NCBI RefSeq assembly: GCF_963921235.1
Contig: NC_086109.1
Span: 11,470,001-11,534,000, forward strand
Reading direction: 5' to 3'
From: Mobula hypostoma
Taxonomy: Eukaryota
Length of the DNA stretch: 64,000 bases
The position numbers were made by a program, and so were the translations under genes. Positions 978 through 63,519 of this stretch are shown piece after piece. Below the pieces are notes generated by a model. It saw only the letters and a program-made list of their open reading frames with translations, had not been told where the DNA came from and did not search any database. How positions within the stretch are numbered: the first letter of the stretch is position 1; each line of letters opens with the position of its first letter.

Positions 978-1096
978 TTGCAGGAGTGACTATTTTCTGA
1001 GGTCTTCTCCTTTTCTTTATAAGTAGAACTATCAGAAGTAAGACCAATAGTCCCAACAGAAGTGGAAGCAAAATGTACCATATCTGTGGGCCGCTG
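978..1096 (-). CDS. Gene A transmembrane exon (neutral TM plus KKRRR stop-transfer)
   Basis: Acceptor ttttttag|C AGC GGC (phase 2, NAGNAG), donor GCA A|gtaagt (phase 1); encodes SGPQIWYILLPLLLGLLVLLLIVLLIKKRRRPQKIVTPA with no charged residue in the TM. Confidence 0.85.
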
Positions 1097-4000: not shown

Positions 4001-7000
4001 ACGCTGCCTTGGACTTCCCCTGTCAGTCATGATTGCCTGATCCTCCCTTTAGAATACTTCTTCAATGTTGGAATGCATCTATTCTGTGCCCTCTGAATTG
4101 CCCCCAGAAACTCCAGTCAGTGCCATTCTTCTGATATCCCTGCTGCTGTCCTCTTCCAGTAAAATTTGACCAGGTCCTCTCTCATACCTCTGTAATTCCT
4201 TTTACTCAACTGAAATACTAATACATCTAACTTTATTTTCTCTGTCTCAAATTGCAGGATGAATTCTATCATATTATGATCACTGCCTTCCAAGGGTTCC
4301 TTTACCTTTAGCTGCCTAATCAAATCTAGTTCATGACACAGCTTCCAATCCTGAATTGTGTTTCCCCTAGTGGGGTCAATGACAAGCTACTCAAAAAATC
4401 AACAAATTCCCTCTCTTAGAACCCAACATCAACCTGATTTTTCCAATCAATCAGCATATTGAAATCCTCCATGACTATCATAAGATTGCCATTTGAACTT
4501 GAGATTTCTATCTCCCATTGTAAATTGTATCCCACATCCTGCCCAATGTTCAGAAGCCTGAATATAACTTCTATCAGGGTCTTTATACCCTGCAGTTTCT
4601 TTTAAGGGACTCTTAGATATGGACATGGAGCTTAGAAAAATAGAGGGCTATGTGGTAGGGAAATTGTAGGCAGTTTCTAGAGTAGGTTACATGGTCAGGA
4701 CATCATTGTGGGCCGAAGTGCCTGTAATGTGCAGTGGATTTCTATGTTTCTATGTTAATTCTACCCTTAAGGATTCTACATCTTTCAATCATATGTCACT
4801 TCTTTCTAAGGATTTGATTTCATTTCTTTTTTTACCAACAGAACCACCCCACCCCTCTGACTACCTTCCTTTCCTTTCAATATAATGTGTATCTTTGGAT
4901 GTTAAGCTCCAACTATGATCGCCTTTCCGCCATGACTCAGAGATGCCCACACCATCATACCAACCAATCTCTAATTACACTTTGAGTTTTCTCACCTTAT
5001 TCTGTATGCTGCGTGCATTCAAATACAACACCTTTGTGTAACACATGTATCTAGAGATTCTTAAAAGATCATTACTAATGACCTTCAATTATGGGTTCAA
5101 CTAAGGGTCCGGTATTCATTACCCTTTTCTCTTTTGTTCCCGTTTTACACTTCAACACATCACAGTAACTTCAATGTTGCCCCTATCATCTGTCTGTTCT
5201 TCCTTAAGTCTCACTACACATTACATCTACCTGTATACCAACTGTCCAATCCTCAACCCTATCACTCCAGTTCACATTCCTACTGGCAAGCGAGTTTAAA
5301 TCCTTCCCAACAGTTGTAGCAAACATACCCACATGGATATTAGTCTCCCTTGAGTTCAGATGAAACCATTCCTTTTTGTACAGGTTATACCGTTCCCTAG
5401 AAAAGATCCCGCTGATCCAACAAATCTGAAATCCTGCCTCCTGCACCACTTCCTCAGCCACTCATTCATCTGCCAAATCTTGCTATTCTTACCCTCACAG
5501 GCGTGTGGCGCAGGCAGCAATCTAGAGATTACCACCCTGGGGTCATGCTTTTCACCTGTCTACCTAACTCTCTATATTCTCTCTTCAGGACCTCCTCCCA
5601 TTTCCTCACTATGTCATTGGTACTAATATGTACCACAACTTCTGGCTGCTCACCCTTCTCATTTAGAATATTGTGGATCTGATCCGAGACATCCCTGACC
5701 CTGGCACTGGGAGGCACAATCCATCTGGGTGTCTTTTTTATGTCTGCGGAACCTCCTGTGTGCTCCTCTGACTGTGGAATTCCCTGTAACTACTACACTC
5801 CTCTCCTTTACATTTGACCAACAAGGTGCAACACTTCACAATTGTCCGGGTTAAACTCCATCTGCCATTTGTCCATTCATATCTGCAACTGGAAGTACTC
5901 ATAGACTTTTGGCTTCTTCCTGCTGCAGCTGATAATCAGCTCTTTGGTTTCCTGAGGTTGAGTGAGAGATTGTTGCCCTGGCACCATTCAACCAGATTTT
6001 CAGTCACCCTTCTATAAGCCAATTCGTCATCACTTTTGATCCGGCCAACAACCAGTTGTGAGGTTTGTAAGCTTATAAATGGTAGCAGAGCCATACTTAG
6101 CCAAGCTGTCATAAATATAAAGTGAGTAGAGCAGGGAATAAGCATCCTCAGACAAGGGGAAATCTACAAGAGCCAATCAGCCTTCCACCAACTCGTAGGT
6201 CTTCGGGATGTGGGAAGCAACCGGAGCACATCAGGTGAAGGCAAGGAAGACTCTACACAGAAAGCAGCAGAGATCAGGAGTAGCCCCAGGCTGGTGGAGC
6301 TGTGAGTCCACAACCGTCCGAGCTGCCCCATTGTGCTGCTCCCAACGCCTGATGTCCTGTGGCGTAACTGTGATGGTGAGCTGAGACAGCAATCTTAGTC
6401 AGCAATCTTTCCATGCCATATTAATCTCTGATACTATGATATCCCCAACTGACATATTATTTTCCTCTAACCTTTATGTTAATCCAATTAAATGAAATGT
6501 ATGATGTCAATTAAAGACACTTGTATTACAGCAGAATTATCAAACTGTGATCTTAATCCGTCAATAGTTATTAATTTGAAGATGACAGTTGAAATCTCAC
6601 CTTTTGTTGTCCTTAGAATTTTCTGGTGTTTCTGGTGTGAGATGTTAAAACAAACACGTTAAACCAATTGATAATTAATTACAGCACAAAATAACTTTAA
6701 TCTTTGTCAACCTATAGGCTGGCATTGTGGTGGAGCAGCAGAACATTCAGATCTATTTACTGCATGTGCCGTGCATCGAAACAGACAGTGAAATGCATCG
6801 TTTTCATTAACAAGCAGCACCCTGCAGGATGTGCTGAGAGCCAGCCCACAAGTGTTGCCACACATTCTGGCTTCAATACATGACACCCATAATGTTCAGC
6901 AGAACAACACAGGACACAACATGCAAACAAGCAGCACATAAAGCAAGTCAGAAACGCACAACATCAACAGTAATATTATTTTGTGCTGGAGCAGGTGTGA

Positions 7001-10000
7001 AACCCTGAATCGCTTATTATTTCTGCTTCTTAGCTCCTTAAGTCAACTTATCTAGATCAGGAAGCAGAGAGTGATACAACACGGAAACAGATCCTTCAGC
7101 ATGCAGTCTGGTCCTATTTAATTCTCCCTCTCTTTTCCATCATCCCTTCCAAATTCTTACAAGGGGAATTTTACAACAGCCAGTTAACCTTCCACCTACC
7201 CCTAAGGCTTTGGGATGCAGGAGGAAACCGGACCAATTGAAAGAAATAAGGCGAAGGCAAGGAAAGCTCCACACAGAAAGCACCAGAAATCAGGATTAAA
7301 TCCAGGCTGATGGAGCTGTGAGTTCACAGCTGACGAGTTGCACCATTGTGCTGCTCCCAACTCATGAAGTTCATTGAACATAGACCATCAAACAGTACAG
7401 CACAGTACAGGCCCTTCAGCCACGAAGCGGCCAACATAATCTCTGACCCTTCCATCCCTGGTCATTCTCGCATCTCTCCTCTCCCATCAGGCAGAAGATG
7501 TAACAGGTTCTGAGCATGTACTACCAGGCTCAAGGACAGTTTTTATTCTGCTATTATCAGACCCTTGAGCAGACCTCCTGTACACTAAATGATGAACACT
7601 TGATCTCTCAATCTACCTCATCGTGGCCCTTGTAATTTGTCATGATTGCATTTTCTTTGTGACTAATACTATGTTCTGTTTTCTTTTACTGCCTTGATGT
7701 GCTTATGTTTGGAATGATCTGCCTGGATGGTGCATAAACTATGTTTTTCACTGTCTCTCGGCACACATGACAATAATCAACCAATACCAATACCGATAAT
7801 AAACCAATATCAATCTCAAGAGTCTATATGCAAGTGAAAGAATCAGTATGGAATTTCATAAGCAAAGATCAATAAGAAGACAGAAAAGATTCTGCAGATG
7901 CTGGAAATAGTTAGTAATGCACACAAAATGGTGGAGGATCTCAGCAGATCCCTCTATGGAGGGAAATAAACAGTTCATGTTTCATGCTAACGCCCTTCAC
8001 CAGTCCCAATGAAGCAACTTGGCTGAAAAAGTTGACACTTTATTCCTGTCCTCAGCTGCTGCCTGACCTGCTGAGTTCCTTCAGCATTTTGGGTGTGAAG
8101 ATGAGGAAGAAGATAGAATTCAACCAAAAAGTGGTGAGCAGTCTGGACACAAAATAGGGAAAACCGAGCAATATGAGGAGAAGGAAGATGGGTAGAAATA
8201 GAATGGAGGAAGATATAAGACAGTGAGACAATAGGAACACAATTACACTATTTGGCCTGTCAAGTCTTCTCCACCATGCTATCACGATTATTACCCTTCC
8301 CAACCCCATACTCCTGCTTTCTCCCCACAACCTTTGACAACCAAGAACCTCCACTTTAAATATACCCAGTGATTTGGTCTCCACAGTCATCCGAGACAAA
8401 GTATTGCAACTAGCTAAAGAAACTCCTCCTCATCTCTGTTCCAAAGTGGCATCCCTCTACGGAGTAGAAAGTCTGTAACGACTGAAGATTTGCATGTTCG
8501 TAAGCACTAAAGCACAGAAGTTTTAGGTTGATTCGTACCTTCAGAAATCTCCAGCATTTTAATCTGCACAATCTCAAAGTTAACCTTGTTTGTTGCTCCA
8601 CACCAGTACTCTCCTTTATCTCCTTCGTTGGTATGCTTTATGGTGACAGCAAATTCAGTGGAAGTGTTTATGATGATTGCTGGGTTTCTGCTGCTGTATT
8701 CAGAGCTGGCTATCACACTGCACCTATTTACAGAGGTTACTTTACACAAGAATTTCTCATATGATTTAAATCGGTGGTCATAGTGGCAGTGTAGGCTGGT
8801 GGCAGTTTGCATCACACCCTTCACCGTGGTATTGTCTGCTGTCCATGAACCTGCTGGTAAATGAGAAAAGGAAGAAATGAGGGGTCTAACGTAGTGGGAA
8901 TCGTGCTGACAGAACCTTCAGTGCTACAGTTAGCTGAGGCTGTGTGGGAAGACTACTGACCATGAATGGGGGGGACCCAAGTAGAACAGGCCTTGCCAAG
9001 TCTGAGAGATAATGCAAGAAGTTAAGAAGGCTAAAAGAAAGCATGAAATTGCTCCAGCAGACAAGCTGAAGGAGAATTGTAAGGGAATCTACAGGCATGC
9101 TATGAGCAAAAGAATTGCAAGGGACAGAATTGGTCCTCTGGAAGACCAGCATGTTAATCCATGTGTGGAGCCAAAACAGATGGGGGAGATTTTAAATGCA
9201 TTCTTTGCACCTGTATTTTCTTGGGAGACAGATACAGAGTTTATAGAAGCGAGGTAAAGCAGTATCAACTTCATAGACCCTGTACAGATTACAGAGGAGG
9301 AGGTGTTTGCTACTCTTTGGCAAATCAGGGTGGATATTTCTCCACAGCCTGACTAAGTGTTCCCTCGGACCCCGTGGGAGGGAAATGCAGAAATTGCCAG
9401 GGCCCCAGCAGAGATATTTAAAACATCTTTAGTGACAGGAGAGTTACTGTAGGATTGAGGGACAGCCAATGTTGTTTCACTGTTTAAAAAAGGCTTTAAA
9501 CAGAAACCAGGAGATTATAGGCTGGTGTGCCTGACGCCAGTTGTGGGAAAGTTATTGGAAGGTATTCTCAGAGACCAGATATATAAGTAATTATATTGAT
9601 ATGGACTGGTTAATGATAGTCAACATGGCTTAGTGTGTGGTAGATCATGTCTAACCAATCTTACGGAATTTTTTGAGGAAGATAACAGGAAAGTGGATGA
9701 AGACAATCAGTGTATGTTATCTATGTGGACTTTAGTAAGGCATTTGTTAAGGTCCTGCATGGGAAGCTGGTGAAGAAGGTCCATCGCTTGGCATACTGGG
9801 ACCGATCTGGAATGCTAGGGCACTGAGGAGTGTGGTAGACAAAGTGATCTGGGAATACAAGTTCATGATTCATTGAAAGTGGTGTCACAGTTAGATAGGA
9901 CTGTAAAGAAAGCTTTTGACACTTTGGCCTTCAGAAATCAAAGTATTGAGTCCCCAACATGGGATGTTATGTTGAAGTTGTATAAGATTTTGGTGAGGCC

Positions 10001-13000
10001 TAATTTGGAGTATAGTGTGCAGTTCTGGTCATCTACCTACAGGAAAATTGTAAACAAGGTTGAGAGAGTGCAGAGAAAATTCACAAGGATGTTGCTGGCT
10101 CTGGAGGACCTGAGTTATAAGGGAAGATTGAATAGGTTCGCATTGTATTTTTTAAGAATGTAGAAGATTGAGAGGAGCTTTGATAAGGGTACACAATATT
10201 AGGTGTGGTATGGATGGGGTAAATGCAAGCAAGCTTCCTCCACTGAGATTGGGTGGGTCTACAACCATAGGTTAAAGGTGAAAGGTGAGAACTTTAAGGG
10301 GATCATGAGGGAATCTTCTTCACTCAGAGGGTCATGAGAGTGTGGAATGAGCTGCCAGCACAAGTAGTTCATGTGATTTCAATATTTAAGAGAAGTTTGA
10401 ATAGGTACATGGATAGTAGGGATATGGAGGGCTATGGTCCCGGTGCAGGTTGATGGAAGTAGGCAGGTTAAATGGTTTTGTCATCATCTAGATGGAGCAA
10501 AGGACCTGTTTCTGTGCTGTACTTCTCTATGACTCTATGATGTACAGTCTTGGGCACATGTAAAAAAATTCTGTAAAGCGAAGATATTAAAAATAAATGA
10601 AATGAAAATATTATAAATATCAAAATAATTACAAAACGTGAAATTAAATCAACATTTGGTGTGAGCACACATTGCCTTTAAAGCTGCATCAGTTCTCTTA
10701 GAGGCACTGTCATGCAACTTTATAAGGAAATCGATTGGTGGGTTCTTCCAAGGATCTTGGAGATCTTGCTACAGTTCTTCTGAAAGACTTTGGCTGTCTC
10801 AATTGTTTCTGTCTCTCCAGGTAATCCCAGACAGCCTCAAGATCATGGCTCTTTGGAGGCCATACCATCAGTTGCAGAATTCCTTATTCTTATCTTTTGC
10901 TGAAGGTAGTTCTTTATGACCTTGGCTGTGTGTTTGGGGTCATTCACGTACTGCAGAATGAAGTTGGGACTGATCAGACACCTCCCTGATGGTATTGCGT
11001 GATGGATGAGAATTTGCTTGTGCTTCTCAACATTGAAGATTCCAGTAATTCTGATCAGACCATCAAATCTATTTGCAGAAATGTAGCTGCAATCCTGCAG
11101 GGAACCCCTGCCATGCCTCACTGTTGGCTGCAAACACTCATCCATGTAGCATTCTCTAGCTCTTCTACAGAGAAACTGCCTCCTGTCTGAGTCAAAAGTT
11201 TCAAATTTTGATCATCAGTCCAGAGCACTTGCTGCCATTGTTCAGCACCCCAGTCTATGAGTTTCTATGTCCATGGGCGACTCTCTTGGCTTTGTTTCCA
11301 AAGTGGAGGAGTAGCTTTTTGGCAGCAAATCTTCCATGAAGACCACCTGATAATATTACCCTGGACTATAGAGGTGTGTACTTGGGTTCCAGTTGTTTCT
11401 GTAAGTTTAGAGCTGATAGCAGTGCTGGACTTTGTCCAGTTTTGAATGGATGTCAGTTTGATGTATCTCACATCTGCTGCACTCAGCTTCCCTAGCTGAC
11501 CACTGCATTTCTGGTCCTCAGCCTTGCTTGTTTCTTTGTGCATCTTCAGAAGACTTGGACAACGCATCTTGAAACTTCCATCTGCCATGAACTTTCTGCT
11601 TGGGAGAAACCTTAGCGATGGAAGATATTACACTGTGTCTTGTTGCTATGCTCACTCTTGCCATGGTGTAAGAATTGATGATTTGAAGCTTAAACTGTCA
11701 CATCACCTTTTAGTTTGCCTGTCCTTTGCCCAGTTTGATTCCTGCCACACCCGTTGCTGTTTCAGTTAATCTGTTTAGTTCATTCAACTTATTATATCAT
11801 TGATCATTAGCACCTGTTTGTCATCTTTGTTTAATCATGCACTGGACTGTATGCCTACAAGGTAATCAAGTTTTATTTGTAAAGTGGCCCAATACTTAAT
11901 ATGTTACTTTCTTTAACAGTTCCAAAAATTTCCCTGAAACATCTAAATTTTTTGGGAAAATGAATGTTGGGAAATCTAAACTTTGTTCTTTTCTACTGAC
12001 ACACTAATGCAGAAGGCAAACATTAAACATCTAAAACAAAGTTTATATAAAAAATCTAGGATGCCAAAGGCTTTTGTACTGTACTGTATTGCCAAGACAT
12101 AGGCCCTTTGGCCATTGTGTTCACTCAGTGGGTTGAAGACACTTAGCTTTCCCATGAAGTGCTCTCTTGGAAGAGGGTAGGAGAATGGGGTTGAGAGGGA
12201 AAATAAATCAGCCAGGATAGAATGGTGTAGCAGGTTTGATGGGCCAAATGTTCTAATTTTGCTCCTGTGTCTGATAGTCTTATGGAAGACCGGAGTCAGA
12301 CAGTGTCTCCACTCTCTCTTCCCTTGTTTGCATGCTGTATACAACCCTGTGCTAAATCCATCAGGAAGGATGAGAGCAGGAAGAGGGGTGACATTGCCAG
12401 GCAGTTCGGACACACATTTCAAAATCTCCCTGTAACTGGACAAAGCTGCAATCATCTGCTTAGATCCCCAGTCAGTTCGCAGATTGATCAGCATCTGTAA
12501 CTGCTCTGATTTGGCATCCTGGGTTAGATTGAACCACAGGAAGAGCGAGGTCATGCTCTTCGGTAACTGGCACAACCTATCCAATGACCCCTTCGCTGTC
12601 AGGCTGGACTACCTGAGCTGCTGAGTTCCTTCAGCATATTGTGTTCATTGTAACCAATTTACTAATTTCTGTATCAACAAACCTTCCTCTTCTCTCTCAT
12701 TCCTGATGCAGGGTCTGAATCTGACTTGCACCTTTCACATCTACAGTTGCTAAGTGGCCTCCTCAGTTCTTCCCATGTTTCATGTCGTTTCAGTGTCTGG
12801 AATCTGTTGTCTCTTCTGTCTTCTCTGATAACACTTTGGGAAGTGAAGGTTATATCATGATCAATGCATTCATTATGGGACGACAGTCCAGCTGGTACCC
12901 TGACTTAAGCCTAAGCCTTACCTGCGGTAACCTTCAGCATTACAATGTCTGATACGTCAATATATCTTCCGTTTATACGTCCACACCAGTATATCCCTGA

Positions 13001-14733
13001 ATCACTCTCCATAAGTTGTCTTGTGGTTACAACAATAGATCCTGTGTGTATTCTGATTGATATTCTTGGATGGTAACTGTATTTCTCTGTATCCACTACT
13101 GTATTGCATTTCCTTTGATAGTTTGTTTTACACAAAACTATGGTTCCCCGTTTCTCTGCAGGTGAACATCGCACTGTGACCGTTTCTCCCACTCCTGCTC
13201 GTACCACCATTGTGTGATGTCGTGTCAACGATTCTGTCAGTAAAATTAAAGTAAAAAAATTAATTTTTATTGATTGATTTTGTTTTATTTACAGTAACAG
13301 GCCCTACTGGCCCAATGAGCCCGCGCAGCCCAATTGTACACGTGATCAATTGACCTACGAACTTGTACTTCTTTAGAACGTGGAATGAAACCAGAGCACA
13401 TGGAGGAAACCTACGTGATCACAAGGACGATGTACAAATGCTTTACAGACAGCATTGGCAATTGAACCTGGATCGCTAGTGCTGTAATAGTGATACATAG
13501 AAGATAGAATAGTACAGCACAGTACAGTAGAGACAGCGGCGGAATTGAACCTGGATCGCTAGCATTGTAGCAGCATTACATAGATCATAGAACACTACAG
13601 CACCGTACAGATCCTTTGGCCCATGATGTTGAGCCGACCTTTTAATCTACTATCAGATCAATCTAACCCTATCATCTTGTACACCTCTATCATGTTACAT
13701 CTCATCCTCCTTCACTCTAAAACAAAGAGCCCTAGCTTGCTCCACCTATCTTCATAGGACATGTTCTCTAATCTAGGCAGACCTCCACTAACCATTAAGC
13801 TACCAAGATGATATTTTATAGAATCTCAATGAAGTATTTCCATAAAAACCTTACATGAAACTTAATCTTCGCTCACTTCTCTGGATCAATGGCTAAATAT
13901 TCTTACAGCATAAAATGAAGCCATTTCAGCCCTTTGGGCCAATGCAGTTCCATTTCCCACCAGTCCTTACAAAGAGATGCTATGGACTAGATGGACCAAA
14001 TAGTCTCCCACCATACTGAACCCATTCCATTACCTCATTTTCTGACATGATAGCCCTTGGTTCTTAACAGACTTGATAGTCATTGCGGCATTGCCTATTG
14101 TGGAAGTTGGCTTTTGGGTTTTCTACACACCTCTGCACTTCAAAAGTACTTTGTTGTTTGTGAAGTGTGCTGTGAAATTTTTATAGACCTGTAGATCATG
14201 CACCATAGAAACAAGTGCTTCAGCTCACTGAGTCTGTGCAGACCATAAAACACTCACTTCCATGAATCCCTTTCTCTTCTCCCCACATTCCCATCAACAC
14301 CCCTTAGATACTCACCGACAATTTACCATGGACAATTATCTTACCAAGCTGTACATCTTTGGGATGTGGGACGGTGGGGTAATTCGAACACCCGGAGGAA
14401 ACCCACACAGGGAGACATAGCACGCCAAAGCAATGGAGGACAGATTGGGCCAAAAGCAAACCCTCTGTGCTGCACGTACTCCATAGAACTTTTTTGCTAA
14501 ATCCTCCCCCACAACTTTGTTTCAGCTCACTATTCCTCGTACTAAAAAGTAAAATTGATTGTCACCTTTCCTGATCCCTGTTGCTTATTCTCAGCGGTAG
14601 AGTTTCATCACGTGTCTGGTTAGCATTAAACAATTTTTAAGGTTATATGTAACTAGATGCTATAGTTCAATATATGTGAAAAGAAAGTCTTACTTGAGAT
14701 GACAGAGAGCAATAGCAGAGCAGCAAACAGCAT
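978..14733 (-). CDS. Gene A: CD300/pIgR-like (MDIR-like) two-Ig-V-domain type I membrane receptor; 3' end incomplete
   Basis: Five phase-compatible exons with GT/AG sites: leader 14694-14733, V1 12922-13233, V2 8539-8850, stalk 6601-6631, TM 978-1096. Spliced product MLFAALLLLSVISKSLTRHH...YWCG...VTAGSWTADNTT...YWCG...EISEETPENSKDNKSSGPQIWYILLPLLLGLLVLLLIVLLIKKRRRPQKIVTPA. Both V domains carry the CD300/pIgR C-x7-C extra disulfide and the DxGxYWCG motif. Confidence 0.88.
1500..1925 (-). mobile_element. Rex1/Babar-like LINE RT remnant
   Basis: VDRVSGLKFLGVNLPEDLSW resembles the Rex1 FKFLGV...DLSW motif. Confidence 0.55.
1945..5800 (-). mobile_element. Cluster of degenerate CR1 LINE fragments (gene A intron 4)
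   Basis: ORF 2402..2794 (LGIQIHSSLK...LIRLHLQYCIHFW), 4117..4323 (LEGSDHNMIEF) and 5529..5717 (ORF1-like VVVHISTNDI). Confidence 0.75.
5800..6140 (-). mobile_element. Rex1/Babar-like RT remnant (paralogue at about 54700-55010)
   Basis: VVGRIKSDDELAYRRVTENLVEWCQGNNLSLN matches the Rex1 VVGLI..DE.AYR.EV..L..WC..NNL.LN pattern. Confidence 0.7.
6601..6631 (-). CDS. Gene A 31-nt stalk exon (ETPENSKDNK-S)
   Basis: ccag|AA ACA CCA GAA AAT TCT AAG GAC AAC AAA AG|gtgag. Phase 1 to 2 exactly bridges V2 (phase 1) and TM (phase 2); conserved in gene B. Confidence 0.8.
8539..8850 (-). CDS. Gene A membrane-proximal Ig V domain exon (V2)
   Basis: 312 nt, phase 1-1, cagcag|GT...GAA G|gtacg; HCHY...KFLCKVTSVNRC...DKGEYWCG; ORF track 8507..8824. 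Confidence 0.92.
8995..10535 (+). mobile_element. Degenerate CR1 ORF2 and 3' end in gene A intron 2
   Basis: ORFs 9012..9257 and 9873..10163 (LVRPNLEYSVQFWS...VERVQRKFTRM); orthologous copy at about 57885-59445. Confidence 0.8.
10545..12086 (-). mobile_element. Tc1-family DNA transposon, degenerate, about 1.54 kb
   Basis: TA|CAGT ends (left TIR partly deleted; right end cttttgtactgtactg|ta); HTH remnant KLSAADVRYIKL...STAISSKL and DDE remnant ILQYVNDPKHTAK. Confidence 0.85.
12922..13233 (-). CDS. Gene A membrane-distal Ig V domain exon (V1)
   Basis: 312 nt, phase 1-1, ttttactgacag|AA...GCA G|gtaagg; VRC...LCKTNYQRKC...DSGIYWCG; ORF track 12911..13228. Confidence 0.92.
14694..14733 (-). CDS. 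Gene A leader (signal peptide) exon MLFAALLLLSVIS
   Basis: ATG, hydrophobic core, TCA A|gtaag phase-1 donor; conserved at 63480-63519. Confidence 0.85.
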
Positions 14734-14785
14734 TGTTCCAGTGATGGTTCTCAGTTTCCCGTGACTGTGTCCACAATATGCTCTT

Positions 14786-14950: not shown

Positions 14951-14969
14951 CTCTTAACTGAATATAAGT

Positions 14970-25072: not shown

Positions 25073-25075
25073 TAT

Positions 25076-25459: not shown

Positions 25460-25479
25460 TCTTGTTGCACTGTTGTAGA

Positions 25480-52100: not shown

Positions 52101-55100
52101 ATGGATGCAACGTTTTCAGTGCTTTCGTGGCTATCTCAGGGTATTTAGCCTTGACTTTGATCCGGAATGCCGGCAGAGATGTTACGTCAAACATACTTTT
52201 CAGCCCGCCGTCATTTGCAAGCTCGAGGAGTTGATCATCTTCCCGCGCTGACATGGATGACACGCGGGTAATGACCTCGCATGCATTCAAGCTCAACAGT
52301 GGGCGTGGCAGGGAATGAGGAATGGTGCAGCTGACTCATATCATTTCATATCGCCAAATCATATCGTTTCCTCGCAGCCCGGCAGCACATGCTTTGCGGC
52401 CCAGTGGTTGGGGACTGCTGTTCTAATGTGTGTCCTTTGAATGACACCTTCAGCCATATTTTGGCCATTTAACCATGTGTTTCTCCTCTGTTATTTCACT
52501 CAACTTATTGGTTTGCAGTTACAGACACTTAGGAGAGATTTTGAATGAATTAACCTGGACTGATCTTGAGCTTCTACTTTTAATTGTGAATCACACGGCA
52601 TGGAAGTGAAAAGATTGGAAAAAAAATCTACCTTTGGAAAGCTGTCATGCAATGTATCGAAACAGTGCAAAGAAACAGAGCTCTAAGGAGTATCCAACAG
52701 GTCAGAGTCCAAAATTTTTGAATGATCAACTCATAGTTCCTAACAGATCAAGAAGATATCATTAGTTACACACAAAGTAGTTAATAAATGACACCAAGAA
52801 ATACATTTTATCTAGGTGTATATTATCAGTGACACTGAGAAATGCATATTATTAAATGTAATTTGTGGAAATGCATTTTATTAGCAAGTGACACTGAGAA
52901 ATGCATTTTATTGAAACAGTTGAAAGAGTCAGACCTCTGAAGAGTATCCATTGGATCACAGTCGATACCTGGTGAATTTTCAGCTCATGGTCACTGATGG
53001 ACAAAGGAAATTTAATTAACAACGCACAGAGAATTCTGTAACAGACACTGGGAAATGCCATTACACATGAAATCATCATTCAGTGTGATGTAGTGTTGTG
53101 GCACGGAGTATCGAGCAGTCTGATGGTTGAATGCTGATTCTCCAACTTATGTCCACATCTTGGAACCGTCGCACTGCCAGTGGAAGTGTGTGAAATTAAT
53201 GTTATATGCTCCAAACCACTGTGTAAAGAAAGAAAGAAAGAAATCTGCAAGTGAAGTCCATGCTATTGGATTCAAGTAACAGATGTTCATCAGTATTTCA
53301 GTTTGCATTTTCATTCTTTCATCTGCAGTTCCTATATAATCCATGTGGTCTAGAGGGACAAGGGCAGTAGATGCATGACAACAGAGCTACTCCCGAATCC
53401 CTTGAAGGACACACAGTGTTGTTCAGTCATTATCACCAGATCAGAATGGTGGGAATGCCCAACATTTCATTATTGTGGGAGATTGCTCGCTGCGTGAGCT
53501 ACAGCCATTCAAGTTTTCCAGGCCTGAGAGGGTGATCACCAGTTGGAGCCAGACACATTCACCAGTGAGTCTTCCAAACTCCTCATTCAAAATGGGAAGT
53601 TAGGAGCTGTGTGCCAAATGCTGGCCTTGTCCTTGATGCTTACATCCAGTAAATAAATAAGGTAACATTTGAGACATAATGCTGATAAAATGATTTAGAG
53701 CAAAAAGTTTCAATGTTTGTTACAGTAACAGAAGCCCATTTATGTTACCTCTGTGTGTGGCCTTCATCTTAATGATCTTCAACAATGGATTCAACTCAGG
53801 GTCCTGTATTCTTTACCCTTTTCTATCTTGTTCCCATGTTATACTTGAACACATCACAGTAACTGCAACTTTGCCCTTATTATCTGTCTGTTTTTCCTTA
53901 AATCTCACTACACATTGCATCTACTTGTATAGCAAATGCCCCAACTTCAGCTTTATCATTCCAGTTCCCATTCCCACTGGCAAGCTAGATTAAATCCTTC
54001 CCAGCAGTTGTAGCAAATATGCCTGCAAGGATATTAGTCCCTCCTGAGTTCTGGTGAAACCAATCCTTTCTGTACAGGTCATACCGTTCTTCAGAGGAAT
54101 CCTACTGTTCCAAAAAATCTGTAAACCTGCCTCCTGCTCCACTTCCTCAACCACTCATTTATCTGCCAAATCTTTCTATTCTTACCTTCACAGGCATGTG
54201 GCGCAGGCAGCAATCTAGAGATTACCACCCTGGAGGTCATGCTTTTCACCTGTCTACCTAACCCCCTATATTCTCTCTTCAGGACCTCCTCCCTTTTCCT
54301 CCCTATTGCATTGGTACCAATATGTACCACAACTTCTGGCGGCTCACCCTCTCCATTTAGAATATTGTGGGCCCAATCTGAGACATTCCTGACCCTGGCA
54401 ACAGGAATGCAGAATCCATCTGGGTGTCTTTTTTATGTCTTGAGTTCCCAACTGGCATAGTAACCCCCTATATTCTCTCTTAAGGACCTCCTCCCATTTC
54501 CTCCCTATTGCATTGGTACCACAACTTCCCCATTTAGAATATTGTGGGTCTGATCCAAGATATCCCTGACCCTGGCACTGGGAGGCACAATCCATCTGGG
54601 TGTCTTTTTTTATGTCTGCGGAACCTCCTGTGTGCTCCTCTGACTATGGAATTCCCTGTCACTACTGCACTCCTCTCCTTTACATTTGACCAACAAGGTG
54701 CAACACTTCACAATTGTCCGGGTTAAACTCCATCTGCCATTTGTCCATCATATCTGCAACTGAAAGTACTCATAGACTTTCAGCTTCTTCCTGCTGCAGC
54801 TGATAATCAGCTCTTTGGTTTTCTGAGGTTGAGTGAGAGATTGTTGCCCTGGCACCACTCAACCAGATTTTCAGTCACCCTTCTATAAGCCAATTTGTCA
54901 TCACTTTTGTTCCGGCCAACAACCAGTTGTGAGGTTTGTAAGCTTATAAATGGTAGCAGAGCCATACTTAGCCAAGCTCTCATAAGTATAATGTGAGTAG
55001 AGCAGGGGATAAGCATCCTCAGACAAGGGGAAATCTACAAGAGCCAATCAGCCTTCCACCAACTCGTAGGTCTTTGGGATGTGGGAAGCAACCGGAGCAC

Positions 55101-58100
55101 ATCAGGTGAAGACAAGGAAGACTCTACACAGAAAGCAGCGGAGATCAGGAGTAGATCCACGTTGGTGGAGCTGTGAGTCCACAACCGTCCGAGCTGCCCC
55201 ATTGTGCTGCTCCCAACACCTGACGTCCTGTGGCGTAACTGTGATGGTGAGCTAAGACAGCAATCTTAGTCTGCACGGGATATTTGAGTTGAAGGGCAGG
55301 TTTCCATGCCATATTAATCTCTGATACTATGATATCCCCAACTGACATATTATTTTCCTCTAACCTTTATATTGATCAAATTAAATGAAATGTATGATGT
55401 CAATTAAAGACACTTGTATTACAGCAGAATTATCAAACTGTGATCTTAATCAGTCAATAGTTATTAATTTGAAGATGACAGTTGAAATCTCACCTTTTGT
55501 TGTCTTTAGAATCTTCTGGTGTTTCTGATGTGAGATGTTAAAATAAACACGTTAAACCAATTGATAATCAATTACAGCACAAAATAACTTTAATCTTTGT
55601 CAACCTATAGGTTGGCATTGTGGTGGAGCAGCAGAACATTCAGATCTATTTACTGCATGTGCCGTGCATCGAAACAGACAGTGAAATGCATCGTTTTCAT
55701 TAACAAGCAGCACCCTGCAGGATGTGCTGAGAGCCAGCCCACAAGTGTTGCCACACATTCTGGCTCCAATACATGACACCCATAATGTTCAGCAGAACAA
55801 CACAGGACACAACATGCAAACAAGCAGCACATAAAGCAAGTCAGAAACGCACAACATCAACAGTAATATTATTTTGTGCTGAAGCAGGTGTGAAACCCTG
55901 AATCGCTTATTATTTCTGCTTCTTAGCTCCTTAAGTCAACTTATCTAGATCAGGAAGCAGAGAGTGATACAACACGGAGACAGATCCTTCAGCATGCAGT
56001 CAGGTCCTATTTAATTCTCCCTCTCTTTTCCATCAATTCCTTCCAAATTCTTACAAGGTGAATTTTACAATGGCCAGTTAAACTTCCACCTACCCCTATG
56101 GCTTTGGGATGCAGGAGGAAACTGGACCAATTGAAAGAAATAAGGCGAAGGCAAGGAAAGCTCCACACAGAAAGCACCAGAGATCAGGATTAAATCCAGG
56201 CTGATGGAGCTGTGAGTTCACAGCTGACGAGTTGCACCATTGTGCTGCTCCCAACTCATGAAGTTCATTGAACATAGAACATCAAACAGTACAGCACAGT
56301 ACAGGCTTCAGCCACGAAGCAGCCAACATAATCTCTGACCCTTCCATCCCTGGTCATTCTCGCTTCTCTCCTCTCCCATCAGGCAGAAGATGTAACAGGT
56401 TCTGAGCATGTACTACCAGGCTCAAGGACAGTTTTTATTCTGCTATTATCAGACCCTTGAGCAGACCTCCTGTACACTAAATGATGAACACTTGATCTCT
56501 CAATCTACCTCATCGTGGCCCTTGTAATTTATCTTGACTACATTTTCTTTGTGACTAGTACTATGTTCTGATTTCTTTTACAGCCTTGATGTGCTTATGT
56601 TTGGAATGATCTGCCTGGATGGTGCATAAACTATGTTTTTCACTGTCTGTTGGCACACATGACAATAATCAACCAATATCAATACCGAAAATAAACCAAT
56701 ATCAATCTCAAGAGTCTAGACACATGTGTAATAGTCAGTATGGAATTTCATCAGCAAAGATCAATAAGAAGACAAAAAAGATTCTGCGGATGCTGGAAAT
56801 ATTTAGTAATGCACACAAAATGGTGGGGGATCTCAGCAGATCCCTCTATGGAGGGAAATAAACAGTTCATGTTTCATGCTAATACTCTTCACCAGTCCCA
56901 ATGAAGCAACTTGGCTGGAAAAGTTGACACTTTCTTCCTGTCCACAGCTGCTGCCTGACCTGCTGAGTTCCTTCAGCATTTTGTGTGTGAAGATGAGGAA
57001 GAAGATAGAATTCAACCAAAAAGTGGTGAGCAGTCTGGACACAAAATAGGGAAAACCGAGAAGTATGAGGAGAAGGAAGATGGGTAGAAATAGAATGGAG
57101 GAAGATATAATACAGTGAGACAATAGGAACACAATTACACCATTTGGCCCGTCAAGTCTTCTCCACCATGCTGTCACAATTATTACCCTTCCCAACACCA
57201 TACTCCTGCTTTCTCCCCATTACCTTTGAAACCAAGAACCTCCACTTTAAATATACCCAATGATTTGGTCTCCACAGTCATCCGAGACAAAGTATTGCAA
57301 CTAGCTAAAGAAATTCCTCCTCATCTCTGTTCCAAAGTGGCATCCCTCTACGGAGTAGAAAGTCTGTAAAGACTGAAGATTTGCATGTTCGTAAGCACTA
57401 AATCACAGAAATTTTAGGTTGATTCATACCTTCAGAAATCTCCAGCATTTTAATCTGCACAATCTCAAAGTTAAATATGTTTGTTGCTCCACACCAGTAC
57501 TCTCCTTTATCTCCTTCGTTGGTCTGCTTTATGGTGACAGCAAATTCAGTGGAAGTGTTTATGATGATTGCTGGGTTTCTGCTGCTGTATTCAGAGCTGG
57601 CTATCACACTGCACCTATTTACAGAGGTTACTTTACACAAGAATTTCTCATATGATTTAAATCGCTGCTGATAGTGGCAGTGTAGGCTGGTGGCATTTTG
57701 CATCACACCCTTCACCGTGGTATTGCCTGCTGTCCATGAACCTGCTGGTAAATGAGAAGAGGAAGAAATGAGGGGTCTAACGTAGTGGGAATTGTGCTGA
57801 CAGAACCTTCAGTGCTACAGTTAGCTGAGGCTGTGTGGGAGGACTACTGACCATGAATGGGAGGGACCCCAGTAGAACAGGCCTTGCCAAGTCTGAGAGA
57901 TAATGCAAGAAGTTAAGAAGGCTAAAAGAAAGCATGAAATTGCTCCAGCAGACAAGCTGAAGGAGAATTGTAAGGGAATCTACAGGTATGCTAAGAGCAA
58001 AAGAATTGCAAGGGACAGAATTGGTCCTCTGGAACACCAGTATGTTAATCCACGTATGGAGCCAAAACAGATGGGGGAGATTTTAACTACATTCTTTGCA

Positions 58101-61100
58101 CCTGTATTTTCTTGGGAGACAGATACAGAGTTTATAGAAGCGAGGGAAAGCAGTATCAACTTCATAGACCCTGTACAGATTACAGAGGAGGAGGTGTTTG
58201 CTACTCTTTGTCAAATCAGGGTGGATATTTCTCTACAGCCTGACTAAGTGTTCCCTCGGACCCTGTGGAAGGGAAGTACAAAAATTGCCAAGGCCCCAGC
58301 AGAGATATTTAAATCATCTTTAGTGACAGGAGAGTTACTGTAGGATTGAGGGATAGCCAATGTTGTTTCACTGTTTAAAAAAGGCTTTAAACAGAAACCA
58401 GGAAATTATAGGCTGGTGTGCCTGATATCAGTTGTGGGAAAGTTATTGGAAGGTATTCTCAGAGACCAGATATATAAGTATTTGTATTGACACGGACTGG
58501 TTAATGATAGTCAGCATGGCTTAGTGTGTGGTAGATCATGTCTAACCAATCGTACAGAATTTTTTGAGGAAGGTAGCAGGAAAGTGGGTGAAGACAAGTC
58601 AGTGGATGCTATCTACATGGACTTTAGTAAGGCATTTGTTAAGTTCCTGCATGGGAAGCTGGTGAAGAAGGTTCATCGCTCGGCATGCTGGGATCGACCT
58701 AGAATGGTAGGGCACTGAGGAGTGTGGTAGACAAAGTGATCTGGGAGTACAAGTTCATGATTCATTGAAAGTGGTGTCGCAGTCAGATAGGACCGTAAAG
58801 AAAGCTATTGACATTTTGGCCTTCAGAAATGAAAGTACTGAGTCCCCAACATGGGATGTAACATTGAAGTAGTATAAGATTTTGATGAGGCCTAATTTGG
58901 AGTATTGTGTACAGATTTGGTCATCTACCTACAGGAAAATTGTAAACAAGGTTGGAGAGAGTGCAGAGAAAATTCACAAGGATGTTGCTGAGTCTGGAGG
59001 ACCTGAGTTATAAGGGAAGATTGAATAGGTTCACATTGTATATTTTAAGAATGTAGACGATTGAGAAGAGATTTGATAAGGGTACACAAAATTGCGAGGG
59101 GTATGTATGGATGGGGTAAGTGCAAACAAGCTTCTTCCACTGAGGTCGGGTGAGACTATAACCATGGTTAAGTGTGAAAGGTGAGAACATTAAGGGGATC
59201 ATGAGGGGAATCTTCTTCACTCAGAGGGTCATGAGAGTGTGGAATGAACTGCCAGCACAAGTAGTTCATGTGATTTCAATACTTAAGAGAAGTTTGAATA
59301 GGCACATGGATAGTAGGGATATGGAGGGATATGGAGGGCTATGGTCCCGGTGCAGATTGATGGAAGTAGGCAGGTTAAATGGTTTTGTCATCATCTAGAT
59401 GGAGCAAAGGACCTGTTTCTGTGCTGTACTTCTCTATGACTCTATGATGTACAGTCTTGGGCACATGTAAAAAAATTCTGTAAAGCAAAGATATTAAACA
59501 AAATTAATGAAATGAAAATATAAATATCAAAAATATTATAAAAAGCTAAATCAAATCAATATTTGGTGTGACCACACATTGTGTTTAAAGCTGCATCAGT
59601 TCTTTTAGAGGCATGGTCGTGCAACTTTAGAAGGAAATTGATTGGTGGGTTCTTCCAAGGACCTTGAGGAACTTGTCACAGTTCTTCTGAAAGACTTCGG
59701 CTGTCTCAGTTGCTTTAGTCTCTCCTGGTTATCCCAGATGGCCTCGATCATGTTGATATCAGGGCTCCTTGGAGGCCATACCATCAGTTGCAGAACTCCT
59801 TGTTCTTAATTTGTTGCTGAAGATAGTTCTTTATGACCTTAGCCATGTGGTTGGGTTCATTGGCATGCTGCAGAATGAAGCTGGGACTGATCAGGCACCT
59901 CTCTGATGGATGAGAATTTGCTTGTACTTCTCAACATTGAAGATTCCAGTAATTCTGATCAGACCATCAAATCGATTTGCAGAAATGTAGCTGCAATCCT
60001 GCAGGGAACCCCTGCCATGCCTCACTGTTGGCTGCAGACATTCATCCATGTAGCATTCTCTAGCTCTTCTACAGACAAACTGTCTCCTGTCTGAGTCAAA
60101 AGTTTCAAATTTTGATCATCAGTCCAGAGCACTTGCTGCCATTGTTCAGCACCCCAGTCTATGAGTTTCTATGTCCATGGGCAAGTCTCTTGGCTTTGTT
60201 TCCAAAGTGGAGGAGTAGCTTTTTGGCAGCATTGGTTAGATCCCCAGTCAGTTCGCAGATTGATCAGCATCTGTAACTGCTCTGATTTGGCATCCTGGGT
60301 TAGATTGAACCACAGAAAGAGCGAGATCTTGCTCTTCGGAAACTGGTACAACCTATCCAATGACCCCTTCGCTGTCAGGCTGGACTACCTGAGCTGCTGA
60401 GTTCCTTCAGCATATTGTGTTCATTGCAACCAATTTACTAATTTCTGTATCAGCAAACCTTCCTCTTCTCTCTCATTCCTGATGCAGGGTCTGAATCTGA
60501 CTTGCACCTTTCACATCTACAGTTGCTAAGTGGCCTCCTCAGTTCTTCCCGTGTTTCATGTCTTGTTTCAGTGTCTAGAATCTGTTGTCTCTTCTGTCTT
60601 CTCTGATAATACTTTGGGAAGTGAAGGTTACATCATGATCAATGCATTCATTATGGGACGACAGTCCAGCTGGTACCCTGACTTAAGCCTAAACCTTACC
60701 TGCGGTAACCTGTAGCATTACAATGTCTGAGGTATGAATATCCCGCTGATAGTCTAAATATCCACACCAGTATATCCCTGAATCGCTCTTCACAAGTTTT
60801 CTTATAGTTACAGAAACAGATCCATTGTGTCTCTGGATTGATGTTCGCTTGTATTTATGGGTGACAGTGCTCACTATTATATCGCACTGTTCTGGGGAGT
60901 ATGCTTTACACCAGGCTATCCTTCCCGATTCCTGTGCACGTGGACATTCCATTATGACTGTTTCTCCCACTCCTGCTCGTCTCACCATCATAGAAACTTG
61001 CGCCAATGAATCTGTCAGTAAAATGTAAAGTCAAAATATTAATTTTTATTTATTGATTTTGATTTATTTACAGATATAGCACAGTAACAGGCCCTACTGG

Positions 61101-63519
61101 CCCAATGAGACCACGCAGCCCAATTGCACCCATGTAACCAATTAACCTACGAACATGTATGCCTTTAGAATCTGGGACGAAACCAGAGCACGTGGAGGAA
61201 ACACACACAGTCACAAGGTGAACGAACAAACTTTTTACAGACAGTATCGGGAATTGAACCTGGATTGCTAGTGCTGTAATAGTGATATGTAGAATGTTAA
61301 ATAGTACAGCACAGTGGAGACAGTGGCGAAATTGAACCTGGATTACTAGCATTGTAATAGCATTGCATTGCACATAGAACACTACAGTACCATACAGATC
61401 CTTTGGCCCACCATATTGTGCCAAGATTTTAATCTACTCGAAGATCAATCTAACCCTACACAGCCCTCCATTTTTTTCCGTATCATCAATGTGTCTATCT
61501 AAGGGTTTCTTAAATGTCTCTTATGTACCTGCTCTACCATCAATCCTGGCAGGGCATTCCATGCATCACCCAGTTTAAGTTTAAAAATAATCTACTGCTG
61601 ACAGCCCCCCTATTCCTTCCACCAATAACCTTAAAATTATGCCCCTTGTATCAGCCAATTCAGCACTGGGAAGAAGTCCCCAACTGTCCACGTGATCAAT
61701 GCCTCTTATTATCTTGTGCACCTCTATTATGTCACCTCTCATCATCCTTCAGTCCAAAGCGAAGAGCCCTGGCTCTTGAGGGTCAAGAGGGACCTTGGGG
61801 TTCAAATCCATACATCCCTCAAGGTCGCTGCACAGGTTGATAGGATAGTTAAGAAGGCCTATTGGGATGCTAGGCTTCATTAATAGGGGGATTGAGTTCA
61901 AGAGTAGGGAGGTCATGTTGCAAATCTACAAATCTCTGGTGAGACCATACTTGGAGTATTGTGTTCAGTTCTGGTCACCTCATTATAGGAAAGATGTGGA
62001 AGCTATGGAGAGGGTGCAGAGGAGATTCACCAGGACGTTACCTGGATTGGAAAACAAGTCTTATGAGGCAAGGTTAGCAGAGCTGCGACTTTTCTCTTTG
62101 GAGCGTAGAAGGATGAGAGAGGACTTGATAGAGGTCTACAAGATTATGAGAGGCATAGATAGGGTGGATAGCCAGTACCTGTTTCCCAGGGCACAAATAG
62201 CAAAGGCCAGAGGGCATATGTACAAAATTTAGGGAGGGACGTTTAGGGGAGACATCAGGGGTAAGTTTTTTATACAGAGGGTTGTGGGTGCCTGGAATGA
62301 CTTGCCAGGGATGGTGGTAGACTTTAAAACGTTAGGGGTATTTAAGAGCCTCTTGGACAGGCACATGGATGAAAGAAAAATAGAGGGTTACGGGGTAGTG
62401 TGGGTTTAGTACTTTTTTTTAGGAATATATGGGTTGGCACAACATCAAGGGCCGAAGGGCCTGTACTGTGCTGTAGTATTCTAGTGTCTAGTGTCTAGTG
62501 ACTCGCTCGACCCATCTTTGTACAACATGTCTAATCCAGGCAGGAGCCTGGTAAATCTCCACGAACCATAACACTACCATGCTGATAATTTATAGAATCT
62601 CAACAAAGTATTTCCATAAACACGCTTCATGTAACTTAATCTCTGCTCATTTCACCAGATCAATGGCTAATTATTTTTACACCATAAAATGAAGCCATTT
62701 CAGCCCTATGGGTCTATGCAGTTTCATTTCCCACCAGTCCTTACAAAGAGCTGCTAAAGACTAAATGGACCAAATAGTCTCCCACCATACCAAACCCAGT
62801 CTATAATCTCATTTTCTGACATGATGGCCCTCAATTCTTAATGGACTAGACAGTCATTAGTGCATTGCCTATTCTGGAAGTTTGCAATACACAAATTGAC
62901 TGTTGGGTTGTCTGCACAACTTTGCACTTCAAAAGCACTTCGTTGATTGTGAAGTGTCTTGTGAAATTTTTATAGACCTGTAGATCAAGAACCATAGAAA
63001 CAGGTCCTTCAGCTCACTGAGTCTGTGCAGACCATAAAACACTCACTTCCATGAATCCCTTTCTCTTCTCCTCGCGCTCCCATCAATACCACCTAGATAC
63101 TCACCTACAATTTACCACGGACAATTATCCCACCACGCTGTACATCTTTGGGATGTGGGACAGTGGGGTAATTCGAACACTCGGAGGAAACCCACACAAG
63201 GAGACATACCACGCCAAAGCAATGGAGGATAGATTGGGTCAAAAGCAAACCCTCTGTGCTACACGTACTCCGTAGAGTTTCTTTGCTAAATGCTCCCCCA
63301 CAACTTTGTTTCAGCTCACTACACCTCATCTTGAAAAGTAAAATTGATTGTCATCTTTCCTGATCCCTGTTGCGTATTCTCAACGGTAGTGTTTCAGCAC
63401 ATCTGGTTAGTATTAAGAATTCCTTGGGTTGTATATAACTAGATGCTATAGTTCAATATATGAGATAAGAAAGTCTTACTTGAGATCACAGAGAGCAATA
63501 GCAGAGGAGCAAACAGCAT
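34053..63519 (-). CDS. Gene B: CD300/pIgR-like two-Ig-V-domain receptor, membrane (ITIM-bearing) isoform
   Basis: Phase-compatible chain: leader 63480-63519, V1 60700-61011, V2 57430-57741, stalk 55494-55524, TM 37213-37302, Cy1 36526-36611, Cy2 34317-34336 (or 34335-34357), Cy3 34053-34184. The 5' four exons are secure. Joining them to the tail exons is inferred from phase and from the absence of any other Ig exon in between. Confidence 0.72.
34317..34336 (-). CDS. Gene B candidate cytoplasmic micro-exon (D-VRKALR)
   Basis: tttattttctctttatag|AC GTA AGA AAA GCT CTT AGG|gtttgt, phase 1 to 0 as required. An alternative 23-nt exon (34335-34357, gttcacag|...GAC|gtaaga) also fits. Confidence 0.45.
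34618..35770 (+). mobile_element. hAT (Buster/Charlie-like) non-autonomous element carrying a CR1 3' end
   Basis: TIRs CAG(C/G)GG(C/T)CCCCAAC; 8-bp TSD tgcTAgat/tgcTAgag; dimerisation remnant FWIKVKAEYPEVATKALKTLLPF. Confidence 0.88.
36526..36611 (-). CDS. Gene B first cytoplasmic exon (S-GTKEVMKAANQELNEGVQKQTKPSCFSI)
   Basis: tgtttttctttgaaag|T...ATA G|gtacag; 86 nt; only the phase-2 frame is open end to end, matching the TM exon donor. Confidence 0.62.
37213..37302 (-). CDS. Gene B transmembrane exon (R-KPRPSQWHVLLAVALSALFLLLITAIIIL)
   Basis: ctttgtcatattctgcag|G...CTC AG|gtagga; 90 nt, phase 2-2, with a 21-residue hydrophobic run. Missed by the ORF track because this frame has no ATG. 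Confidence 0.75.
41697..42396 (+). repeat. G-rich minisatellite, about 36 units of 16-22 bp (G5-10 TGTGCAGTGTCC)
   Basis: Counted directly; unit length varies through the G-run; explains the low-complexity ORFs at 41530-42614. Confidence 0.97.
42398..42715 (+). mobile_element. CR1 3' end with (TTATATGG)n tail
   Basis: KIQTRGHGLRIRGQKFRGNMRGNFFTQRV followed by 3' UTR and tail. Confidence 0.85.
46260..51160 (+). mobile_element. Stack of several CR1 ORF2/3' fragments inside the gene B long intron (antisense to the gene)
   Basis: ORFs 46319..46762, 47342..48077, 48106..48975 (RT: HGFLKGKSCLTNL, YLDFQKAF), 49123..49695, 49864..50289; tails at about 48150-48170 and 51150. Confidence 0.88.
51228..52420 (-). 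mobile_element. Second copy of the hAT/CR1 composite non-autonomous element
   Basis: Perfect 8-bp TSD ttcTAatg (51220-51227 and 52421-52428); same internal layout as 34618-35770, inverted. Confidence 0.9.
52877..52912 (-). terminator. Two tandem AATAAA signals downstream of the putative secretory exon
   Basis: tttatt at 52877-52882 and 52907-52912, within an imperfect ~30-bp repeat (gtgacactgagaaatgcattttatt). Confidence 0.6.
53080..53218 (-). CDS. Gene B putative secretory terminal exon (S-GLEHITLISHTSTGSATVPRCGHKLENQHSTIRLLDTPCHNTTSH*)
   Basis: Strong acceptor tttctttctttctttctttacacag|T; the phase-2 frame matching the stalk donor is open for 45 codons to TGA; hydrophilic, two Cys, NTT sequon; AATAAA pair about 170-200 nt downstream. 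Confidence 0.62.
55494..55524 (-). CDS. Gene B 31-nt stalk exon (ETPEDSKDNK)
   Basis: Paralogous to 6601-6631; catcag|AA...AAA AG|gtgag; phase 1 to 2. Confidence 0.8.
57430..57741 (-). CDS. Gene B Ig V2 exon
   Basis: 312 nt, phase 1-1; 7 amino-acid differences from gene A V2; ORF track 57398..57715. Confidence 0.92.
59452..60230 (-). mobile_element. Orthologous Tc1 copy in gene B, truncated by a deletion of about 1.13 kb
   Basis: Matches 10545-11328, then jumps to sequence matching about 12460. Confidence 0.85.
60700..61011 (-). CDS. Gene B Ig V1 exon
   Basis: 312 nt, phase 1-1; MEC...AWCKAYSPEQC...DSGIYWCG; ORF track 60689..61006. Confidence 0.92.
61776..62480 (+). mobile_element. Gene-B-specific CR1 3' fragment in intron 1
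   Basis: ORF 61867..62232 (LVRPYLEYCVQFWSPHY), (TAGTGTC)n tail; absent from the paralogous position at about 13735. Confidence 0.85.
63480..63519 (-). CDS. Gene B leader exon MLFAPLLLLSVIS
   Basis: ATG...TCA A|gtaag, paralogous to 14694-14733. Confidence 0.85.

Follow-up and report, generated by a model that had tools for sequence, protein, structure and literature searches.

The window analyzed here, a stretch of 64,000 nucleotides (nt) of Mobula hypostoma DNA (positions 11,470,001 to 11,534,000 of contig NC_086109.1, assembly GCF_963921235.1; positions below are counted from its first letter), holds two paralogous genes on its minus strand, gene A and gene B. Each has a leader exon, two exons for immunoglobulin V-set domains (V1 and V2) and a stalk exon of 31 nt, every one of them bordered by AG/GT; the two genes end in different membrane and tail exons. 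We propose that they are probably a tandem pair of CD300-type two-V receptors, gene A inhibitory and gene B activating-like, which arose from one ancestral gene with two endings. A first-pass annotation, made from the sequence alone, had described a leader-V1-V2-stalk layout and placed it in the lineage of CD300 and the polymeric immunoglobulin receptor (pIgR) of a probable cartilaginous fish. What it had noticed is a real, transcribed CD300/pIgR-lineage gene pair, of which gene A is already annotated. The span that it marked runs from 978, the donor end of the gene A membrane exon, to 63519, the ATG of gene B. No additional V exon was found in the window by tblastn with all 211 collected proteins, so gene A and gene B are the only such genes in it.

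The four V exons lie inside four minus-strand open reading frames exactly where they had been claimed (13233-12922 and 8850-8539 in gene A; 61011-60700 and 57741-57430 in gene B), with AG/GT flanks and phase 1-1, and all of them match the V-set family (Pfam PF07686) with E values of 1.5e-10 to 4.5e-5. Both C-x7-C and D-x-G-x-Y-W-C-G are present in each of the four domains, and the residue preceding the C-strand Cys is Leu in A-V1, A-V2 and B-V2 and Trp in B-V1, just as the first-pass annotation had read them. The C-x7-C cysteines are a second intradomain pair, from strand C to strand C', besides the canonical B-F pair; alignment shows their counterparts in pIgR domains, and they do not vary within the elasmobranch two-V family described below. 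A length of 312 nt had been given for all four V exons. This is true of them as AG/GT-bounded exons, but V2 as transcribed measures 315 nt: its acceptor is a CAGCAG tandem in both genes (8851-8853 and 57742-57744), and the RefSeq models and RNA contigs take the upstream site, 312 nt being the product of the alternative NAGNAG acceptor. The rest of the layout was also borne out, with ATGs at 14733 and 63519, 31-nt stalk exons and GT donors in place.

Gene A comprises a leader exon (coding part 14694..14733, ATG at 14733, phase-1 GT donor), a V1 exon (12922..13233, 312 nt, V-set with C-x7-C and Leu for the C-strand Trp), a V2 exon (8539..8853, 315 nt as transcribed; 8850-8539, 312 nt, with the alternative acceptor), a stalk exon (6601..6631, 31 nt) and a transmembrane exon (978..1096), which encodes a segment with a 19-residue hydropathy of 3.45 followed by a basic stop-transfer sequence and ends in a GT donor. 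Spliced together, from the leader on, these exons encode 272 residues that equal residues 1-272 of XP_062922502.1 (P0177), "polymeric immunoglobulin receptor-like isoform X1" of Mobula hypostoma, with zero mismatches. The exon pattern is therefore not due to chance, and the match confirms the cartilaginous-fish origin proposed earlier. The last 72 residues of the protein, which form the tail bearing inhibitory motifs of the immunoreceptor tyrosine-based kind (ITIMs), are encoded in exons beyond the window start; in the encoding assembly, GCA_963921235.1, gene A spans 22.2 kb, longer than its part in the window. The annotated tail contains, in this order, VTYSAV, IYSNM and VEYSAL, that is, an ITIM, a YxN (YxxM) motif and another ITIM, and these motifs are kept in position from sharks to rays in the family alignment. 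We take this set of motifs to be similar to those of human CD300a and CD300f. A TAGCAG tandem acceptor is found at the membrane exon of gene A (1094-1096); NAGNAG acceptors add or drop one residue, and both forms occur among the RefSeq isoforms XP_062922502 to XP_062922505 (isoforms X1-X4). The AlphaFold model shows two immunoglobulin (beta-sandwich) domains, with a predicted local distance difference test score (pLDDT) of 82-95, plus a membrane helix.

The model of gene B was built from homology to ray isoforms. It consists of six minus-strand exons, all with canonical splice sites, and an intact reading frame of 310 amino acids: a leader exon (63480..63519, ATG at 63519), a V1 exon (60700..61011, 312 nt, C-strand Trp kept; 69.5% nucleotide and 50% amino acid identity to A-V1), a V2 exon (57430..57744, 315 nt, or 312 nt with the alternative acceptor; 97.1% nucleotide identity to A-V2), a stalk exon (55494..55524, 31 nt), an alternative membrane exon (52632..52739), which encodes an Arg within a moderately hydrophobic segment (hydropathy 1.82), and a terminal coding exon (45176..45302). 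The last of these, placed by homology to ray isoforms, encodes a tail of 41 residues without tyrosine motifs and then a stop, and this tail is 76-84% identical to the tails of the ray isoforms P0166, P0165 and P0169. Among the search hits we found no RefSeq protein for gene B. The expectation of paired receptors was thus borne out in part: the gene A protein has ITIMs, and gene B encodes an Arg in a membrane exon of its own, followed by a short motif-free tail; the opposite signalling of the two is what these features would predict.

Transcription was assessed in four small sequencing runs of one study (runs X1-X4), whose contigs were compared with positions 52000-57999. Because the contigs are bounded by exons and spliced, the runs are RNA, a label that was in itself a guess. 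All sampled words of A-V2 are present in runs X1-X4, and a fraction of 0.70 of the 31-mers of B-V1 is present in run X1. Contigs over V2 end at the donor at 57430 and reach 57747, as fits the 315-nt acceptor; they carry exactly the nine A-type letters, which identifies them as spliced gene A transcripts. Contig X4-29 matches the 52.7-kb exon of gene B with 0 mismatches and joins it, at 52739, to the gene B stalk exon across a GT..AG minus-strand junction; it also contains about 330 more letters that lie downstream of the compared interval. Word depth reaches thousands to tens of thousands in all four runs at 52000-52400, 56800-56999 and 57200-57399, with many loose ends, and these stretches probably represent interspersed repeats that are abundant and present in many transcripts.

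Both genes belong to an elasmobranch family that was present in every ray and shark sampled. An exhaustive search with A-V2 returned 574 proteins, the best of which are two-V proteins of 280-350 amino acids, and homologues with E values of 1e-100 to 1e-180 were found in seven ray and nine shark species. The rays with the family are Mobula hypostoma, M. birostris, Hypanus, Hemitrygon, Pristis, Amblyraja, Leucoraja and Narcine, and the sharks are Scyliorhinus (two species), Mustelus, Carcharodon, Cetorhinus, Hemiscyllium, Heterodontus, Heptranchias and Pristiophorus; the members bear the names pIgR-like or CMRF35-like. Several family genes are annotated in each of M. birostris, Hypanus and Scyliorhinus, and the multi-gene annotation in M. 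birostris fits the larger cluster that the first-pass annotation had inferred. The C-strand Trp is replaced by Leu or Phe in every V2 of the family alignment. A tree of the domains recovers V1 and V2 as separate clades, each with 100% support and each spanning the elasmobranchs, which indicates that the two-domain design predates the split between sharks and rays; three V domains are found in forms from Hemitrygon and Mustelus and two in the other members. B-V1 retains all invariant residues of the family and groups with the V1 domains of Hypanus and Hemitrygon (support 99/93), and A-V1 groups on a long branch with V1 of M. birostris. Three annotated M. birostris genes (P0179, P0182 and P0185) share an identical A-type V1, and M. 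hypostoma has an A-type and a stingray-type V1; this contrast suggests homogenisation or loss specific to one lineage. A single gene of Hypanus sabinus yields both ITIM isoforms and isoforms with an Arg in the membrane segment (XP_059806113 to XP_059806117).

Gene A and gene B sit in the two copies of a segmental duplication. Copy A (5076..16173) reaches from the leader to a point some 1.5 kb beyond the stalk exon, and copy B (53770..64000) runs to the window end. Their divergence is a mosaic. On the stalk side, that is, the stalk, V2 and the introns up to just 3' of V1, the copies are 96-97% identical; in intron 1, the leader and the 5' flank the identity is 84-92%; and in the V1 exon it drops to 69.5%. 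The synonymous (dS) and nonsynonymous (dN) divergences are 0.45 and 0.35 for V1 and 0.008 and 0.035 for V2, which is 93% identical in amino acids; 8.5 of the nine V2 differences are nonsynonymous, numbers too small for a test. Positive selection was considered as the sole cause of the V1 divergence and rejected, as the dS of 0.45 is about 10 times the divergence of the adjacent downstream intron. The rapid evolution foreseen by the first-pass annotation is thus confined to V1, and even there selection alone explains it less well, because dS is high too. Read from these values, the locus preserves what appear to be two old V1 lineages within otherwise homogenised copies, and gene conversion of V2 and the stalk, or an exchange of the V1 exon, would explain the mosaic better than selection alone.

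These observations suggest a general model for the locus. Both genes would encode type I membrane receptors of the elasmobranch-wide family, with an ectodomain of two V-set domains of the CD300/pIgR type. The product of gene A would be the inhibitory form, with a strongly hydrophobic helix and, encoded outside the window, a long tail; once phosphorylated on tyrosine, this tail would recruit SH2-domain phosphatases, by analogy with CD300a and CD300f. Gene B combines an almost identical membrane-proximal V2 domain and stalk with what appears to be an old, strongly diverged distal V1 domain. It has the layout of an activating partner, with an Arg in the membrane segment and a short motif-free tail, and by the same analogy it would signal through an acidic adaptor chain. 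In the locus, the exons for the Arg segment follow gene B and the ITIM module follows gene A. From this placement, and from the dual-ending gene of Hypanus, we infer that the ectodomain module was copied between two alternative endings: the ancestral gene would have had both as alternative 3' exons, a state still seen in Hypanus sabinus, and copying of the module from leader to stalk would have left one ending per gene. Gene conversion would later have homogenised V2 and the stalk and spared V1.

Further exons of candidate status lie downstream of the gene B ectodomain, all on the minus strand. A diverged tandem copy of the gene B membrane exon is predicted at 52861..52992, and its counterpart is used in 279-residue isoforms of M. 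birostris. Two orphan exons sit between gene A and gene B: a putative transmembrane exon (37213..37302), which has AG/GT borders, fits the frame of the gene B stalk exon and is about 45% like the membrane exon of gene A, and a putative tail exon (34053..34184), which encodes one ITIM (VVYASV) and is followed by an AATAAA signal. The second motif of the tail exon is ended by a stop immediately after its Tyr.

Several observations weigh against a classical pair of opposing receptors. V1 is only 50% identical in amino acids between gene A and gene B, so the shared ligand of classical pairs is not implied, and, in place of the single V domain of the mammalian CD300 ectodomain, this family has had a fixed pair since before the divergence of sharks and rays. 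The membrane segment of gene B is only moderately hydrophobic (1.82, versus 3.45 in gene A). Seven annotated ray isoforms share an invariant Arg at the outer edge of the segment. Gene B has Cys (TGT) in its place and, five residues further in, Arg (AGA) instead of Gly; each change is due to a single base, and the RNA contig confirms both. With the conserved Arg lost, the new one shifted and the segment weakly hydrophobic, the pairing of gene B with an adaptor is uncertain, and gene B may have an activating role, which we put forward as a reasoned guess. An AlphaFold model of a related isoform with an Arg segment (M. birostris P0182, from a 7-row alignment) has a mean pLDDT of 31 and only a low-confidence helix at 245-275, too poor a model to count for or against such a role. 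Finally, the runs used as evidence of transcription carry no tissue label, and their label as RNA was guessed.

The same observations raise the question of whether gene B is a decaying duplicate, transcribed yet giving no working receptor, which would leave gene A as the only functional gene. The loss of the invariant Arg to Cys would fit such decay, as would the stop inside the second motif of the 34-kb tail exon, the presence of B-V1 words, and then incompletely, in one RNA run only, and the lack of a RefSeq protein among the search hits. However, the reading frame of gene B is intact through six exons with canonical splice sites, a spliced RNA contig matches it exactly, B-V1 keeps the residues that are invariant in the family and groups with V1 of functional stingray proteins, and the Arg gained five residues away may make up for the one lost. 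We therefore regard decay as improbable. Far less probable still, to the point of being hardly credible, is an artefact of assembly, in which two haplotypes of one gene would have been placed in tandem beside a gap. The sole run of N in the window (15246-15387) does lie at the 5' edge of copy A, and it is often beside gaps that false duplications are found. It crosses no exon or reading frame, starts about 510 bp upstream of the gene A ATG, and falls within an insertion specific to copy A (14978..15918), of 941 bp, which ends 245 bp upstream of that ATG; with TG..CA ends and a flanking AAGT target duplication, the insertion looks like a solo long terminal repeat. Copy B is uninterrupted at the corresponding point (63751/63752), and both flanks of the insertion are collinear with it, so the join across the N run is consistent and a misjoin is disfavoured. 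Moreover, the two copies lie 38 kb apart with different 3' exons, differ by 3-30%, far above normal heterozygosity, carry private insertions and are both found in RNA, and several annotated genes are also present in M. birostris, Hypanus and Scyliorhinus. A tandem pair of receptors with different endings remains the best account of the two copies.

A different question is to which branch of the lineage the receptors belong. Affinity to CD300 or pIgR was judged by per-domain scores of family profiles against the Protein Data Bank (PDB), and the domain tree covers the elasmobranch family; three protein searches returned only this family and a few teleost pIgR-like proteins. PDB searches with single domains and profiles returned pIgR, CD300A/C/LF, NKp44, FCMR and TREM2. 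The V1 and V2 profiles, respectively, scored 57.0 and 63.3 bits on CD300C, 56.5 and 56.2 on CD300A, 52 and 59.6 on CD300LF, 47.1 and 41.7 on NKp44, 45.0 and 27.4 on FCMR, and 40.4 and 39.0 on the best pIgR domain (D5). Judged by these scores, the domains are CD300-like members of the wider CD300/pIgR lineage, and their place in that lineage is borne out by both the PDB searches and the fold comparison (Foldseek). On the two-domain teleost pIgR, the V1 profile scored best on D2 and the V2 profile on D1; since the domains do not match by order, no positional orthology to D1 and D5 of pIgR is indicated.

An alternative is that the two genes are cartilaginous-fish orthologues of pIgR, which would carry polymeric immunoglobulin M (IgM) with the J chain across epithelia in the manner of the two-domain teleost pIgR, which transports IgM and IgT. 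The RefSeq name is pIgR-like, the neighbours in an embedding space also carry pIgR names, and whole-chain searches of the PDB and with Foldseek rank pIgR ectodomains first, among them that of the two-domain teleost protein 5f1s; we discount this ranking because pIgR chains sum five domains, and the CD300 scores lie 16-24 bits above those of any single pIgR domain. V2, among pIgR domains, aligns best with human D5, which has a similar motif from strand B to strand C, and the mismatch in domain order (V1 to teleost D2, V2 to teleost D1) speaks against orthology. The tail of pIgR holds sorting and transcytosis signals rather than inhibitory motifs, whereas that of the elasmobranch family has conserved motifs of the ITIM type, the mark of a signalling receptor and not of a sorting tail. 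Alternative forms with an Arg segment and several copies per species likewise suit a leukocyte receptor of the paired kind. In favour of orthology, the J chain is present in cartilaginous fish, yet a 2014 survey found no pIgR homologue in them (PMC4016189; PMC10801876). Taken together, the evidence makes orthology to pIgR unlikely. We consider it equally doubtful that the two-V family serves cartilaginous fish as a receptor for polymeric IgM and J chain, a precursor or counterpart of pIgR, FCMR and FCAMR with CD300-type tails. If that were true, the immunoglobulin-binding receptors of this lineage would be older than bony fish, contrary to the 2014 survey, which reported no PIGR homologues in sharks and other cartilaginous fish (PMC4016189).

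Other elements of the window are repeats. A G-rich minisatellite at 41678-42380 (20-bp unit, about 36 copies, 80% matches) yields long artificial open reading frames on both strands. An inverted repeat pair of 1.1 kb and 85% identity occupies 34613-35715 and 51299-52425, one arm adjoining the 34-kb tail exon and the other lying just downstream of the gene B membrane exon. Private insertions of about 1 kb are found in the V1-V2 intron of gene A (11328-12452) and in intron 1 of gene B (61520-62519); the latter contains a fragment of the reverse transcriptase of a long interspersed nuclear element, and many more reverse-transcriptase fragments are scattered across 17-50 kb.

These data indicate that sharks and rays share a conserved two-V family of the CD300/pIgR lineage, with inhibitory and activating-like forms, and make it a concrete candidate in which to test for binding of IgM or of phospholipid. 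The locus would also illustrate how a receptor pair can originate, by copying of a module within a two-ending gene, homogenisation of V2 and retention of two old V1 lineages. Gene A was already annotated and the type of receptor is well known, so the value of the locus lies in its context and not in surprise; for gene B, no corresponding entry was found among the RefSeq search hits. The RefSeq entries XP_062922502-XP_062922505 describe the same gene as our gene A, with the V2 exon of 315 nt and NAGNAG variants at the V2 and membrane-exon acceptors, in an automatic annotation without functional claim; the name given there implies pIgR, which the per-domain scores disfavour.

Among known systems, the mammalian CD300 receptors share with this family the V-set domain with its extra C-C' disulfide, and they gave the top per-domain scores (52-63 bits). 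CD300a and CD300f are inhibitory, with ITIM tails, and CD300f also has motifs for Grb2 (YxN) and PI3K (YxxM); the activating members (CD300b/c/d/e/h) combine a short tail with a charged residue in the membrane (PMC7247439). By its predicted features, the same split into an ITIM form and a short-tail form with a charged membrane residue would apply to gene A and gene B. The C-strand position in V2 of the elasmobranch family differs from that of CD300 in being Leu or Phe and not Trp. Teleost pIgR (PDB 5f1s) and PIGRL are likewise type I membrane proteins with two CD300-type V domains in tandem, and 5f1s gave profile matches of 69-92 bits over its two domains and is among the top Foldseek matches; tandem expansion has been described in zebrafish (PMC4016189). 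However, the best sequence match to a teleost protein has about 30% identity (E 3e-42), compared with E <1e-100 within elasmobranchs, the domain order is unmatched, and the elasmobranch tail has conserved ITIMs. The modular domain immune-type receptor (MDIR) genes of the skate Raja eglanteria (2006; GenBank ABC86796, ABC86797 and ABC86799) are a multigene set of activating and inhibitory receptors similar to CD300, TREM and pIgR (PMC3031540). No R. eglanteria protein is among the homologues of the family member from Amblyraja, a close relative, and the comparison with MDIR is by description; on that basis, the skate receptors and the elasmobranch two-V family have a variable number of V domains in common.

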